Source of the DNA: Bugula neritina
Taxonomy: Eukaryota > Animalia > Bryozoa
Assembly (NCBI GenBank): GCA_964035545.1
Contig: OZ037766.1
Span: 19,332,767-19,396,766 of the forward strand
Length of the DNA stretch: 64,000 nt
Direction of reading: 5' to 3'
Made by a program: the position numbers and the translations under genes
Notes under the pieces: model-generated
Seen by the model: the letters and a program-made list of their open reading frames with translations, nothing else
Told to the model about the DNA's origin: nothing
Database searches by the model: none
Part shown: piece after piece, positions 12,201-21,800 of the stretch
Numbering within the stretch: the stretch's first letter is position 1
How the letters are laid out: the number at the start of each line of letters is the position of its first letter

Positions 12201-14043
12201 CTCAATTTTGTTAAAGCTAGGAAAATCGTGGCTCGTATTATCCTCAACAAAATCAATGTAAAGATAACTCCAGGTACACATCCTGAGACACAGTGTGGCC
12301 TCGCAACAGCAGGAGTACTATTGACATGGTGTTTAGCTTGTGCCATATCCAAAATAAATGTGCTGAACAGGACATGGAGCTATATGCTGCATTCATAGAT
12401 TTTACAAAAGCCTTTGATACAGGTCTCTTGAGTGTCCAGAAGAAGTTTGGTTTCACTGAAAAAGTCACCAACCTAATCAAAGCCCTTCATGTACAGATGC
12501 AAGCCGAGGTGGTGTAAGGTAGAGACTAGAGACACATCAAGTGAGTTTGCAGTAACCAGTAGTGTCGAGCATGGATGTGTTCTTGCGCCAACACTGTTTT
12601 CCTTATACCTGACTGCTATGTTAGAAGTTGAATTTAACGATGTGCAAACTAAACATAGGGCAAATCAGACTTGGTCCAGTTCAAGTCCAAAAACTACCAA
12701 AAACTTAGTTAGATGTTTTTGCAGATGACAGTACTTTGGTGGCACATGGCGCTAGCCGCTAAGAGGTACCAAGAGGAAAAAGTTGCAAAAGCGACAGCTC
12801 AGTTCAGCATGACAACATTAGAGACAGAATGCATGTACCAACCAATCAAACTCACCTACCTGAACCTGAAGTTATTATGATAGACCATGAATCTCTTGTA
12901 CTTGCTTCAGACTTTACTTACCAAGGAAGCACTGTTCCTTGCATTGTAAATATAAATAAGGAGATGCAAAACCGACTAGGCAAAGCAAGCGCAGCTTACA
13001 GCAAGCTCCAGCAGAGACTGTGGGACAACAGACACATCTCCATTAGGGTTAAATGTAAAGCCTATAAAGTGGTGGTGCTCTCAAGCATCCTTTATGGAGC
13101 TGAAACATGGACAACATACAGGACACAGGTAAAGAAGTTAAGCACCTCCATAATGAGACAAAAAGCATAATGACTGCTAAGTGGTATGACAAAATAGCAA
13201 ATGATGAATGGAATGGAATGGGGAGCAATCAACTTGAGTTCCTAGCAACTGGTGGCTAAAAACAGAGTAAAGAACTGCAACCAAATCAAAACCTAATCCA
13301 CAAAACAGTCATTGTCACATCAACTGACCAGTGACTGCAAGAGAGACAGCGTATTTGTAACATTATAGAAAATGTAGTCATTCTAAATATTAGACTCAGT
13401 TTTCATTCAAGTACGACTGAACATGTGCGTAATGCTGAATGAATACTAACAGAAACATAACAAACGAATTTCAACAGGTGACAAAGGAACGAACAACGTC
13501 TACACAATAATGAATTAATAAATGTACACCTACTACAGCTACTAGTACTACTAGTACTAGTACTAGCATTATCAATATCAGTATTTTTATAATTATATCA
13601 AGTAAGGTTTTACATTGACCAATCAGAATTTTAGTGATTATGTTTCAAACCTGAAAAGCAATAGCTGTGCACCCATCACATTTAAAGCTGCTAGGTAGTC
13701 TAACAGAGTAGGCTTCTTCGTCACTCAAAGTTGGGGTTGACCATTTCATTACGTTTTCTCTAACCATACCTTCAGGAACTGGGGGAAGATCATGATCATT
13801 ATCAATACCATTTTTCTTATCGTAATTAGTTTCTTCTTCGTCGTCATCATCGTCATCATCATCATCGTGGTGATCGCCATTAGTTTGAGTAAGAGTTTCT
13901 GTAGGAGGGGCGTCCAAAGGTTTCGTTTCATCTAAGTCGGAAACTTTAATTTGTTCGCCATGTTCATTTTGTCCACTGACACCATGAAATCCCACGCCTA
14001 ATACCGTGAGCAAGAAAATTGATGTGATAATTAGTTTCCGCAT
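9213..14043 (-). CDS. MZB1: MZB1/pERp1-like ER-resident saposin-fold (Canopy/DUF3456-type) protein, 4 exons, 260 aa
   Basis: Exons 14043-13651, 10939-10821, 10405-10301, 9378-9213, GT-AG and phase-consistent. Signal peptide; PTLSDEEAYSVRLPSSFKCDGCTAIAFQ (cf. human PQLDDEEMYSAHMPAHLRCDACRAVAYQ); YGLKQMGGINRLSGPG...GGKWPNRL (cf. YGVREVDQVKRLTGPG...GGPWPTRL); six Cys; C-terminal KDEL*. Confidence 0.9.
11180..13347 (+). mobile_element. Degenerate 5'-truncated RTE-clade LINE in MZB1-like intron 1 (antisense to host)
   Basis: Frameshifted APE/RT motifs WMHP..HWHLLDY, AFIDFTKAFDT, GCVLAPTLFSLYL, LYGAETWT; 3' end ...GACTGCAAGAGAGA shared with the copy at 18885-22172. Confidence 0.9.
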
Positions 14044-14159
14044 GTTTGCTTTCTTTTCGTGATGAAATTTTAAGAATCACTTCTCTACCTAGAAGCTTCT
14101 ATACCTGGTTCTACCATTCACTAATATCGTAAGCATGAACTGTCAAGTCAGGTAGCTAC

Positions 14160-14250: not shown

Positions 14251-14302
14251 TCAACATTATAAGCAATCCCATGCCAAAAGGAAACAACGTGCTAAGGTTT
14301 TG

Positions 14303-16644
14303 GGTTAGTTCTATATGCAGTATTCTGGCTCGACATCTAGTTTGCTGAATATTTTCTGTTTGGCGCACGTGTTATTGTTGATGTCTGAGATAGTCATTGT
14401 GCACACGTGCGCTCCAACTCAAAGTACATAATATAATACAAAATATTATAATAATATAATGATCAACATAATTATTATGTTCTTTATCCTTAGCTTCCAC
14501 TCACACATTGAATCACACCAACATTTAAAATTTAAGTTCAAGAATTTGTGTAAATATTTATCTACTTTTAGTAGCAAAGTTAAGTTATTGGTAAATCAAA
14601 ACACAGCTGCTGTTAAACTTTATTACTCATAATATTAGTGTACAGCATTAATATTGCTATTAATATATACATTATGAATAGTTTTCAATAATATGTCAAT
14701 ATGTTTTTATTACTAGAGTGCTGCCATTTCCTTTCTTATATTAAAAGTGACCATTTCTGTTTATATTTATTTTTACTGTTATGGCAAGACTTACAATAAA
14801 GTTCTGTCAAATTTAATTACTGTTCTTTCAATCTACTTGGTATTTAAATATATCTCTGAATAAAATTTGTAATTTTATCCTAGTGTTAGCTGCTTGTCTT
14901 TTATGGTACTAAAGTTACAAAATGGTGGATGAGTAGTAGCTTTTATTACAAATAACATAAATGCTGAAAAATATAAAAAATACATCTGCTTATGATAAAA
15001 GTACACTGATAAATTGCATGACTGTGAACGAATAAATATGAGAGAGCTTCTGTTATGTGCAGATCTGTGACTACCTGCTGTACTTTTTCTTCAACACTGT
15101 TATCAATAAGAAGGTAGCCTGCATTGTCCTAAAAATGAATAATCCTAATTATTAAAATATTTATATACATATATATTTAAAATATTTTACTGCGAATAAC
15201 AGGTATGTATAACCATTTAAATTATTTTTAGGAACTTCAATGCATTGAGTCTAGGAGGATATTACTGCTGTGCACTAGTGTATACAAATTTTAGGCAGCC
15301 TCAGTTAAATATTTGCAAGCAGTACTAGGTCTCATAGTGATTTACCTTGCCAACAGGATGTCCAACATGTTCTTGCAAACACAGCATAACAAGCTTGTAC
15401 TGTAATCACTAATTGCCACTGAAGTTGGTCCTGGCCATCACCAACTGATGCCCTTTTTTATCTTTGTAGCAATCATTTTTCGGAACTTTTTAACTTTATA
15501 GCTATTCCCTGTGTTGTAATACAAAATAAAATGTTAGAAATATTAGTCACCAAGGCATCAAGAAAAGCAGCATTAACATGGCGAATATTTGTACTTTAGA
15601 GTATTTAACATCTGTAGAGTAGTGTAAAGTTTTTACAGTTCTATCTAATTTTGAGAGTCTTTTTGGAAATTCTACTATTAGTGCTAAAAACTTTTAAGCA
15701 GTAATTTGTTTGTTCCCAAATATGCAATGTTGTAACTAGTTGAACAGAACAGAAACTATCCTGCTATTTGCCATTATAAAGAACTATGGCGTGCAATGAT
15801 ACTAATTTTCAATAGCTTTCGAGTTTCCATTTTTTTTGGTAACACATTTTTCTTTGCTGACACATAAAATTTGCTGTGCCACCTTTAATAAATGGAATGC
15901 AGTCCAGATAAAACAGCTTCTTCCCTTTCAAGTTAAATGTTTCTATACAAAATCACAGAACATCAAATGCAGTGTAAGGTAAACGGAATAGCAATACTAG
16001 GACCTGTAGTTGAAGAATCGATTAATAAGAAATTATAGCCTCCTTAGCATAAATTTACAATTAAGAAGAATGGGCACAATAAAATTAAAATATAACTGTA
16101 GGCTAATCACTAATCCACAATTGTATACATATTAAATAGATGAGTCATGAGACAGCTTAAAATTGATGTACATATGTATAGTTTACTTTAAATTCAAAAA
16201 TAAATTAGTTTTACATACCACCAGTACCACTACCAATACCAGGTTCACTTCCAATTTGAGTTAGACTTGGAGCAGGTAATCATAATCATAATGATAATCA
16301 TGATCATAATCATAATGGTTGACCTTGAGCTAATAGTAATAGCTGCATGCGCCTAAAATGACCATCAGTGCAACCATACCTGGTTCTACTTTAGATTTTA
16401 AAATTGTCTATTGCTTTAAGAGCATATCCAATTGAGTCATAGCGAGATGTTGTAGAGGTTGTAATGACTTTGTCGTTATGATTATTGGAGTTGGAGAGCA
16501 CTTGTACGCCATGACAGTCAAGGGCGTTAAAATAAGCTGGTGCGTTTTAAATTAAACAGCCAATCAGAGACGCTACCTAATCAACCAATCAAAAAATATC
16601 CAACAACTGAATGCCGAGCCAGATTACTGCATATAGAATTTTCC
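14303..16644 (-). mobile_element. Mutator-like (MULE) TIR element with 9-bp TSD carrying spliced CaRF-like coding remnants
   Basis: TIRs GGTTAGTTCTATATGCAGTATTCTGGCTCG ... CGAGCCAGATTACTGCATATAGAATTTTCC; exact 9-bp TSD AAGGTTTTG at 14294-14302 and 16645-16653; both ends match the MITE at 58495-58936. Confidence 0.85.
15040..15942 (-). pseudogene. Decayed intron-containing CaRF-like / WRKY-GCM1-type zinc-finger gene inside the MULE
   Basis: AG-led segments on the minus strand: from 15942 (LFYLDCIPFIKGGTANFMCQQ), 15508-15346 (KKFRKMIATKIKKG ... YKLVMLCLQEHVGHPVGK|GT, frameshifted) and from 15128 (DNAGYLLIDNSVEEKVQQVV). Motif order resembles CaRF as remembered. Confidence 0.5.
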
Positions 16645-17399
16645 AAGGTTTTGTGACCCAGCTAAAGCATGTCTAATGAAATAATGAGGTTAGTTGAGAC
16701 TTGTTAAAAATTGCTAGGTAACGATTAGGTAAAGTTTTATTTTGAATGTTAATAGTTAAAAGAATCCTAAATTTTTAACTTTTGTAGTTAGCGAAACTTC
16801 TGTTGAAGCGTGTGGCGAAAAATATAGTATGATCATAGCCATAGCCCATACTCATACTGATACTCATAGTCATACCGATACTCATACTGATAGTGATACT
16901 GTCTTAGTCTTGGTAAGCAACTTTAACTTAAACTAGTAGTAGTAACTCTAAGTGTAAGCAAAAAGTCTAATAGAAAAGGAGAATAAAAGTAACGATTTGC
17001 AGTATAGTTTGTTTCATGGTCCGGTTTATCTGAAGTTTTAATTTTGATCTGAATATTTAGTCCTGTAACAGTACTAACTACTAATCTTTAATGATTCTTT
17101 TAATGTGAAAAGTATAATCAGACATGGTTTATTTGGAATTTATTCACTCAGCTTAGAACATCGCTACAAATGATGATTAAGGTAAAAGTTTAATTGATAA
17201 AGAAGTTCTATTTATAAATAAATTTAATGTCACAACTTAGATTCGTAGGCAAAGTATCAAGACTAAGTGTTGCAATAGTTTACTATAACTATAAGTATTG
17301 ACACAAACTTAATGTTTAAGTATTTTAAAGTATTGGTAATAGCATGTGTATAATTTATGTTAAGTATACTTATAGTGATGATATACTTATAGTGATAAG

Positions 17400-18884: not shown

Positions 18885-21800
18885 TCTGCTGAGAGAAGGA
18901 ACATGATAACGCGAAAGTCAAGTTCACTTAACCATTCCACATGCAGTTTTATTGATTATGACAATGGAAGCAGTATTCGATTCCGGCTCGATTGTTGCCC
19001 GGGTTAATGAGGTTTGAACTGGTCCACTCCCGCTTCGGCAGCCAGTGAAAAGTTAGCTAGGAAGCAATGGGAAAACTTGAAAAGCTCTGAGACTAGCAGA
19101 ATGGAATGTTAGAACATCACTTGACCAGAATAATTTAAAAAGACCTGAGAGGCAACAGCACTTTTTGCAACAAAGCTGAGTCAATAGGATATAGATATTG
19201 GAGCTTTGAGTGGAACTCGAATTGCCCTCAATGATAGCCTTGTTGATAATGGGTACACATTATTTTGGAGTGGAAGAGTTGATGGAGAAAGAAGAGAATC
19301 AGGAGTGGGGTTTGCTATCAGGAATGCAATTATGTCTTATCTAGAACAAGAATCAACAGGAATAAGTGATAGAATTATGAGCATGAGACAACCAATGAAA
19401 AAGAATCATTACGCTACAATAGTGAGTGCTTTCGCTCCAACAATGACAAATCCTGAGGAAAAAAGAGGAGTTCTACAATAAACTTAGAGAAACGGTGAGG
19501 ACTATATTTATCTCAGACAAACAGATTATAGCTGGTGACTTTAATGCAAGAGTAGGGTGTGAAGCTCAAAATTGGCCAGGCATTATTTGTAATCAAGGAA
19601 TTGGAAATTGTAACACAAATGGAAGCTGCTACTGGCATTTTGTTCTGAATACCAGCTTGTTATCACGAACACAGTATTCAAGCACAGGCAGCATCATAAA
19701 GCTACCTGGATGTACCCTCGCTCTAAGCATTGGCACCTCCTGGATTATGTGATTACAACCAAGAAAGACCAGAATGATGTGCTAGATACCAGGGCAAGGA
19801 GAAGTGCGGATAGCTCAACCGACCATGACATGATCGGTTGAGCTATCCGCACTTCTCTGCACTTCTCGCACTTCTAGCATTTGCAATCAGGAAAGCAAAA
19901 GACAAGACAAGTGGCAACTCAGCATGCAAACTGAATGTGTGGAAACTGCACAATGAAGATGTGATACAGGAGTTTCAGGAACAGGTGGATGAAGCAATCA
20001 ACTACAAAGATGATGACGATGTAACCTTGAAAGAGAGATGGAAAAGGTTAAAGATCTCAGCCCTCAACACAGCTGTCGAAGTCCTAGGTAGAGCAGAAAG
20101 AAAACATCAAGATTGGTTTGATGACAACGATTCGAAGATGAATGCATTGCTTAATAAACAAATTAAGACTAAATCAAAAGCACTACAAAAGAGAACAAGA
20201 GGTAGCACTGATAATTTAGCGCAAGCACATAGCCAGTTGCAAAAGTACACTCGAGAAAAAGTTCTCAATGGTGGGAGGAAAATGCAGAATCACTCACACA
20301 GGCAGCTGATAAAAACAATATGAAGGCATCTACAATGGCCTTAGGGAAGTGTATGGTCCACAGAACACGGGACCCGCTAAATTGCTGGCCCAATGTGGTA
20401 AAACGGTACTTACAGCAAGGAATAACACTCTAAAAAGTTATGCCTAACATTTTGACCAGCTGCTAAATGTACCAGGGGAAATGGATCAGGAAGCCCTCAA
20501 TAATCTCATAAATATGCCACCCAATTTAAGTCTAGATCATATGCCAGGTTTTGATGAGCTACTGGATGCTATAGATGCAACCAAGGAGAATAAAGCTCCT
20601 GAACAATGTGGCATTTTAGCTGAAGCGTAGAAGTATGTTAGAATCAGGCTTAAAAAGAGGTTGCTTATATATGGAGTAATGAGAAGATGCCACAAAACTG
20701 GAAAGATGCGAGCATTGTGCCAATTTTTAAAAGGGGTAGTATGAAGGACTGTGAAAATTATAGAGGAATCTCACTTTTGTCTATAGCTGGAATGATTATG
20801 GCCAGTATCATCCTCAACAGAATCAATATAAATATAACTCGAGGAATACTTCCAGAGACACAGTGTGACTTTTGAAACAGCAGGAGCACTATTGAAATGA
20901 TATTTAGCTTGCACCAAATTCAAGAGAAATGTGCTGAACAGGACATGGAGCTGTATGCTGTATTTATAGACTTTACAAAAGCCTTTGATACAGTAACAAA
21001 AAATGGCCTCAGGAGTGTACTGAAGAAGTTTGGCTTAACTGAAAAAGCCACCAACTTGATTAAAGCTTTTCATGCAGGCATGCAAGACAAAGTAGTGAAA
21101 GATAGAGATGCATCAAGTGAGTTTGCAGTAACCATTGGTGTCAACCAGGGGTGTGTTCTTGCGCCCACACTATTTTCATTATACCTGACTGCTATGCTTG
21201 AAGTGGCATTTAAAAATGTAAATTCTGCCAATTAGAATTGCGTAAAAATTGCTGGGGTTCAAGTCTACCCAACTGCCAGAAACAACTAGCCCATTCACCA
21301 CTATGTCAATAAAAAAAACCATCAAATGTGTTTTGCCAGAACAGCTGGGGTTGTGGTCAATCTGCTCTAGGGTATTTTTACAAAAATATATTTTTTAAAT
21401 GCATTTTTTAAGCACTTAATTTCAACATTTTGAAAAATGAACTCATAATTCATAAATTTAAGATGTGAAATAAAATAATGCATGTAATAAAATTTGCACA
21501 GCTATTTTCTAAAAGTATGCATTTTGCATTTGAACTTGCAAAAGTCTATATAAGTTATAATGGCGAGTATTCTAGAATTAGTACAAGGTAGTAAATGTAC
21601 CAAGCTTACATAATCTATTGAGAGACATAATGGCTGTAAAATGGTATGACAAAATTATAAACTTACACTTGAAGTCTATTACTATTACTACTAGTACAAG
21701 ACTACGAGTAAGTATAATGTTAACTATAACATTAACATTGACATAAGTATAACTGTAAATCTAACTTTAATGTTTAGCCTTATACTTGTTAACTAATTTA

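Follow-up and report, generated by a model that had tools for sequence, protein, structure and literature searches.

Does a mobile element in the genome of Bugula neritina carry a spliced gene of the CaRF (calcium-responsive transcription factor) type, and does it link that family to Mutator-like (MULE) transposases? The question was raised by a preliminary description of a single locus, in which a Mutator-like transposon with an internal, intron-containing CaRF-like gene had been proposed. The locus lies in a window of 64,000 nucleotides (G000:C2:19332767-19396766), the whole stretch of DNA analysed and the source of all positions given below without a contig name. The genome comprises 216 Mb at ~32% GC. 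A reassigned genetic code (TAA/TAG=Glu) was rejected for this chromosome-scale contig, and all frames were read with the standard one. The element was judged, at a probability of about 0.78, to be an old, decayed and ordinary non-autonomous cut-and-paste DNA transposon, most likely Mutator (MULE), with an interior that holds no recognisable protein and no CaRF/ALS2CR8 domain.

Boundaries were read from the sequence and place the element at 14303-16644 (2342 bp). Its parts are the following.

14294-14302, no strand: left copy of the target-site duplication (TSD), AAGGTTTTG, read from the sequence and identical to 16645-16653
14303-14342, plus strand: left terminal inverted repeat (TIR), starting GGTTAG, 33/40 against the reverse complement of the right end
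14303-14438, plus strand: left arm common to the ~440-bp MITEs, 78-82% identical to about 10 MITE copies
14439-15045, no strand: AT-rich interior backbone, ~26% GC, common to all long copies and to a diverged relative on C3
15046-16134, no strand: central module of 1.09 kb with all three claimed exons
16339-16644, plus strand: right arm common to the MITEs, 78-86% identity, including two CCAAT motifs and the right TIR
16605-16644, plus strand: right TIR, ending TTTTCC, part of the right arm
16645-16653, no strand: right copy of the TSD, AAGGTTTTG, an exact 9/9 match to the left copy

The left end starts GGTTAGTTCTATATGCAG and the right end, reverse-complemented, starts GGAAAATTCTATATGCAG. The TIRs are 40 nt long and GG-terminated, with 33/40 positions matching between the ends, and arms of 34 nt (14309-14342 and 16605-16638, 88% identity) were returned by the inverted-repeat tool. 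The coordinates, the GG-terminated TIRs and the exact 9-bp TSD of the preliminary description were all borne out by this reading. The copy is also dead, as had been stated: it is non-autonomous, and neither a DDE domain nor a long ORF was found in the element (Pfam and reading-frame inspection). The backbone (14439-15045) is 86-87% identical to the copies on C6 and C4 and ~70% identical to the relative at C3:11990415.., and gave no Pfam match. Imperfect ATCATA/ACTCATA-type microsatellite-like runs occur at 16276-16317, in the right part of the element, and at 16829-16898, in the host flank.

A genome-wide search for the TIR had been proposed as a check and was run. The 24-nt TIR core gave 29 matches and an 18-nt terminal TIR pattern gave 36, against 0 for the reversed control of either; the family is real, and 9-bp TSDs recur in other copies. 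By whole-genome DNA search and TIR patterns it is a small family: about ten MITEs of ~440 bp, three further long members, whole or fragmentary, and a single diverged relative. The TIRs are conserved in ~15 copies, and the window copy is the most complete of the long ones. The members outside the main element that are referred to below are listed here.

C6:13921857..: long copy, from the whole-genome DNA search
C4, 10445399 and 10472251: long copy as a TIR pair, ends 26.9 kb apart
C8: fragment of the long form
C3, 11990415..: diverged relative, ~70% identity
58495-58936 of the window, minus strand: second family member in the window, a 442-bp MITE with both TIRs intact, orientation opposite to the main element

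TSDs of other copies are exact over 9 bp in two cases (L011 and L013) and match at 8/9 in two more (L014 and L015), always in a 9-bp register. The flanks of the MITE in the window, CTCCACCAC and CCTCTCCAC, no longer form a clean 9-bp duplication. The ~440-bp MITEs consist of the first ~135 bp and the last ~300 bp of the element. The ancestral state of the left arm survives in the long copies and in the ~70% C3 relative; the MITEs have in common a derived deletion of 8 bp that neither of these has, and are therefore deletion derivatives of the long form. A sister MITE subfamily (~280-400 bp) has termini GGGTTG and GGAATT, a TIR variant ..GCAGTCGGCTGGCTCG and many solo ends; its sites include C1:28644091, C2:31142995, C3:21403090-21403482, C9:744813 and C7:9532886-9533164.

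Two long copies are larger than the window copy. The extra 1957 bp of the C6 copy was considered as missing coding sequence and rejected, being a clean, later and independent nested insertion. The 26.9-kb TIR pair on C4 was considered as an autonomous element and rejected, its interior being nested LTR, non-LTR and pogo-like insertions. These later insertions split the C4 copy by ~24.5 kb (C4:10446130-10470973; L043, L046, L047 and L042). Among them are two gag-pol-like frames of 635 and 362 codons, a fragment of a reverse transcriptase and a frame of 505 codons which, from its first residues, we take to be putatively pogo/Tigger-like.

TSDs of Mutator elements typically have 9 bp. MULE TSDs measure 8-11 bp and MULE TIRs 14-500 bp (PMC6446971), and the 9-bp TSD of the element falls within the former range. 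MULE transposase genes of several families are present in the genome (11 PF10551 matches), and a whole-genome scan for the Merlin/IS1595 transposase (PF12762) gave no candidate. The element was called Mutator because its TSD has 9 bp and the genome holds MULE transposases but no Merlin ones. None of the 36 TIR matches is close to any of the 11 PF10551 matches. The copies encode no transposase, and the genome yielded no autonomous partner. A TIR-like 12-mer beside the MULE gene at C2:20.36 Mb was rejected as chance after sequence reading. For want of an autonomous element with these TIRs, the superfamily call rests on TSD length and on exclusion of alternatives, and Mutator-like is the best and most likely inference rather than a demonstrated assignment. 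Of the earlier claim of a dead, Mutator-like copy, the TIRs, the family-wide 9-bp TSDs and the non-autonomous state therefore stand, whereas no MULE transposase is tied to these TIRs.

It is unlikely that the element belongs outside Mutator, for example to Merlin or to some undescribed group whose TSDs have 9 bp. Merlin elements also make 8-9-bp TSDs, and such membership would agree with the lack of a transposase linked to these TIRs. Against it stand the IS1595/Merlin-type domain, undetectable in a genome that holds several MULE transposase families, and a TSD register that is consistently 9 bp.

The family resembles non-autonomous MULEs and their MITE derivatives in its TIRs, its 9-bp TSD and its insertion near the 5' end of a gene, as well as in the occurrence of longer non-coding elements beside short deletion derivatives, all without a transposase of their own. 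It differs in that no MULE transposase is tied to the TIRs, so that membership is one we infer, and in TIRs (~40-64 nt) that lie at the short end for MULEs.

The reading frame beside the insertion is as follows.

13645-14043, minus strand: host ORF of 132 codons, its ATG ~260 bp from the element, which sits upstream

This ORF, probably a host gene's first exon, opens with a signal-peptide-like stretch; an Asp/Glu run and a C..C motif come next. It gave no Pfam match. Non-LTR retrotransposon reverse transcriptase fragments flank the region at 12250-13170 and 19200-21240, with similar peptide stretches in both. Nesting within a related element was considered because of a 15-nt match that links the left flank (14101-14114) to the interior (16376-16389), and was rejected, as the alignment does not extend.

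For a non-autonomous element of this kind, a transposase supplied in trans would have recognised the inverted ends. A 9-bp staggered cut would have been made at AAGGTTTTG, ~260 bp upstream of the host-gene start codon, and the element would then have been inserted. The 2.3-kb form would be the ancestral-type long form of the family, and the ~440-bp MITEs its internal-deletion derivatives. The three 'exons' would be short open stretches with splice-like signals, present by chance in AT-rich DNA or as relics of some gene.

The central module (15046-16134) is shared by the window, C6, C4 and C8 copies. Its only other occurrence is in a metagenome contig, and it is missing from the diverged C3 relative and from all MITEs. 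The C3 relative shares the backbones on either side of the module (14303-15045 and 16135-16253). The segments claimed as exons, and the site of a length difference within one of them, are as follows.

15840-15942, minus strand: exon-like segment 1, earlier given as LFYLDCIPFIKGGTANFMCQQ, preceded by AG and with no convincing donor
15346-15508, minus strand: exon-like segment 2, acceptor acacag|G and donor AAG|gtaaat
15075-15128, minus strand: exon-like segment 3, 54 nt, acceptor tttttag|G and donor CAG|gtagtc
15454-15459, minus strand: A run with a window-specific 1-bp insertion, 6 A here and 5 in C6 and C4 (alignment)

The splice-like signals lie at 15509/15508 (acacag|G), 15346/15345 (AAG|gtaaat), 15129/15128 (tttttag|G) and 15075/15074 (CAG|gtagtc). 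Acceptors and donors are strong and are conserved in the other copies. Segment 2 measures 163 nt in the window and 162 nt in C6 and C4. The frameshift that had been thought to kill the gene is the extra A of the window copy; without it, reading continues in a frame other than the one proposed earlier for the latter half of exon 2. The majority sequence leaves segment 2 a single open frame, running KKFRKMIAEKIK into RASVGDGQ...CWTSCWQ, and this frame does not carry the H..H motif. In the frame that reads Y.V.L.....H..H, the majority sequence has two closing stops, 20 codons short of the donor, and stops interrupt that frame in 3/3 copies with segment 2. Phase 0 is the sole open phase of segment 3 and does not fit the single open frame of segment 2. 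Because the open frames of segments 2 and 3 are out of phase and the H..H frame is stopped, no intact spliced frame can be rebuilt from the sequences of these copies. The minus-strand peptides and AG/GT signals that had been reported are thus present and do not form a gene. A consensus of long copies, also proposed earlier as a check, did not give an intact spliced ORF, and the majority sequence contradicts the earlier frame model.

Conservation and frame length were no better marks of coding. Identity between copies was 0.90-0.93 for exon 2 and 0.88-0.96 for intron 1, and the exon-like segments in general are no better conserved than the spacers. The shuffled interior had a median longest open frame of 71 codons, and open frames of 66-71 codons are what chance would give at this composition; given this median, a 66-codon frame carries no weight, and the open frame of that length in the C6 copy was rejected as coding evidence. 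The GC content of the exon-like segments (33-39% against 26-30%) shows a modest rise.

It is improbable that the module is a gene relic of some kind, now neutral, either a host fragment taken up in the manner of a Pack-MULE or leftover 5' exons of a lost gene of the family. MULEs and other TIR elements take up gene fragments, also in animals (PMC6446971 and PMC8277862). Such an origin would suit a module that occurs in a single sub-lineage of the long copies and is missing from a C3 relative sharing both flanking backbones. Given the higher GC within the module and the conserved GT-AG-like signals, it retains a small probability. On the other side, no parental gene or paralogue of the module was found in the assembly, either by DNA search with the whole element or by protein searches with the three exon-like frames; the majority sequence has no consistent spliced frame, and ORF lengths are as chance predicts.

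Segment 2 is also without a homologue among 1.84 billion proteins. When its 66-aa frame from the C6 copy was searched with phmmer against that number of representative proteins, one 47-aa fragment of an element copy and one false match were returned; the latter, P0002 (E 9e-6), was rejected as a low-complexity repeat protein. A word-index protein search with the 66-aa frame gave no candidate. The source of the 47-aa fragment is an environmental contig of 932 bp from a JGI metagenome (L060, 3300003318), 91% identical to 15326-15776. The 47-aa 'protein' was annotated there by a prokaryotic gene caller. Since the contig carries a copy of the central module at 91% identity, DNA of the same animal or a close relative was in the sample. 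The element resembles Pack-MULE and Pack-TIR elements, TIR transposons with captured pieces of host genes (PMC8277862), in being TIR-bounded and non-autonomous, with exon-like pieces, intron-like spacers and a sub-lineage-specific module. It lacks the feature that defines them: no parental host gene was found in the assembly, and the exon-like pieces match no protein.

The proposed gene model was searched for CaRF domains exon by exon rather than as a joined peptide. The Pfam set included the PF15299 (ALS2CR8), WRKY, FAR1, GCM and FLYWCH models, at a threshold of E<=10. None of these five matched when 10 peptide pieces of the element, taken from the window, C6 and C4 copies, were run through hmmscan, and the sole match among those pieces was to an unrelated model, PF23792, below threshold (E 0.013; 16 bits, where the cutoff is 27). 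No Pfam match came from four pieces of the C3 relative. Segment 1 gave nothing from Pfam or the ESM Atlas, nothing usable came from the ESM Atlas on two pieces, and Rfam had no match in the element. All 19 exon matches of a genome-wide PF15299 scan (E<=10) fell in genuine CaRF-like genes, and 0/19 in any copy of the element.

Genuine multi-exon ALS2CR8/CaRF-like genes are located at C6:5.39-6.27 Mb, C7:4.58-4.59 Mb and C3:21.379 Mb (loci L031-L040). They are locally amplified, with at least 5 near-identical copies over ~0.9 Mb of C6 and two in tandem on C7. These genes on C3, C6 and C7 are unrelated to the element.

Direct comparison with these genes returned scores at the level of chance. The best tblastx score of the element against them was 24.9 bits, on-motif in segment 1, where ..LFYLDCIPF....G.....CQ aligned with the first ALS2CR8 exon of the gene at C3:21.379 Mb; the median best score of 27 control segments of the same window was ~26.7 bits. 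Alignment of segment 1 to ALS2CR8 first exons with hhalign gave a probability of 1.3%. Local HMMs, thin at 3-4 sequences and without coverage of the H..H motif, were built from the ALS2CR8 exons of the genome, and 4173 six-frame pieces were searched with them, filters switched off. Segment 1 ranked first of the 4173 against the local first-exon profile, at E=2.5 and as a segment pre-chosen for such resemblance. Against the corresponding thin profiles, piece 2a ranked 62 (E 31), and piece 2b and segment 3 fell outside the first 400, the H..H motif lying beyond what the profiles cover. The resemblance to CaRF/ALS2CR8 (PF15299) is thus confined to chance-level motif similarity in one 20-residue stretch (D.IPF......CQ); the element differs in having no profile match, no profile support for the other motifs and reading frames that are inconsistent across copies.

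That the interior is a decayed, spliced DNA-binding gene of the CaRF/ALS2CR8 type, belonging to the transposon and linking CaRF to MULE transposases, is very improbable and already close to refuted: canonical and conserved splice-like signals, the top rank and on-motif alignment of segment 1 and the presence of multi-exon ALS2CR8 genes in the genome speak for it, but scores at chance, the failure of PF15299 and related zinc-finger models to match any piece of any copy, segments 2 and 3 that do not rank against their (thin) exon profiles, an H..H frame stopped in all three copies with exon 2 and a window frameshift that, once undone, leads into another frame all speak against it. The intron-containing CaRF-like gene of the preliminary description thus had no significant profile match, an outcome which that description had itself named as refuting, and the locus lends no support to a link between CaRF and MULE transposases. 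It is just as far-fetched to see in the central module the last remains of a lineage-specific transposon gene with introns and a very remote ALS2CR8/CaRF-like first exon; if that were so, the link of CaRF to MULE-type elements would be real but eroded past statistical detection in these copies.

The ends of the element, which on the preferred reading belong to a non-autonomous and probably Mutator-type transposon, carry one further feature. CCAAT motifs were read at 16560-16564 and 16585-16589, and had been described as boxes at the end upstream of the internal gene. The motifs are present, but they are not end-specific: MITE copies have a CAGCCAATCAGA-type subterminal motif at either end, ~50 nt from the terminus, the two being inverted with respect to each other. 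The CAGCCAATCAGA motif is part of an extended inverted repeat that reaches ~64 nt in the family. Relative to most copies, 8 bp that include the left-end CCAAT motif are missing from the window and C4 copies; the left end of the window copy therefore lacks the motif through an 8-bp deletion, and the motif is not special to an 'upstream' end. It may be a transposase-binding site or a promoter element of the TIR.

For annotation of this genome, the stretch is best masked as a non-autonomous, probably Mutator-type family (2.3-kb long form and ~440-bp MITEs, with 9-bp TSDs) and not annotated as a gene. The inverted ends of the family carry an NF-Y-type CCAAT motif, and the present copy lies ~260 bp upstream of a host start codon. 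Elements of this family could in principle deliver promoter motifs to host genes, which we offer as a candidate idea.
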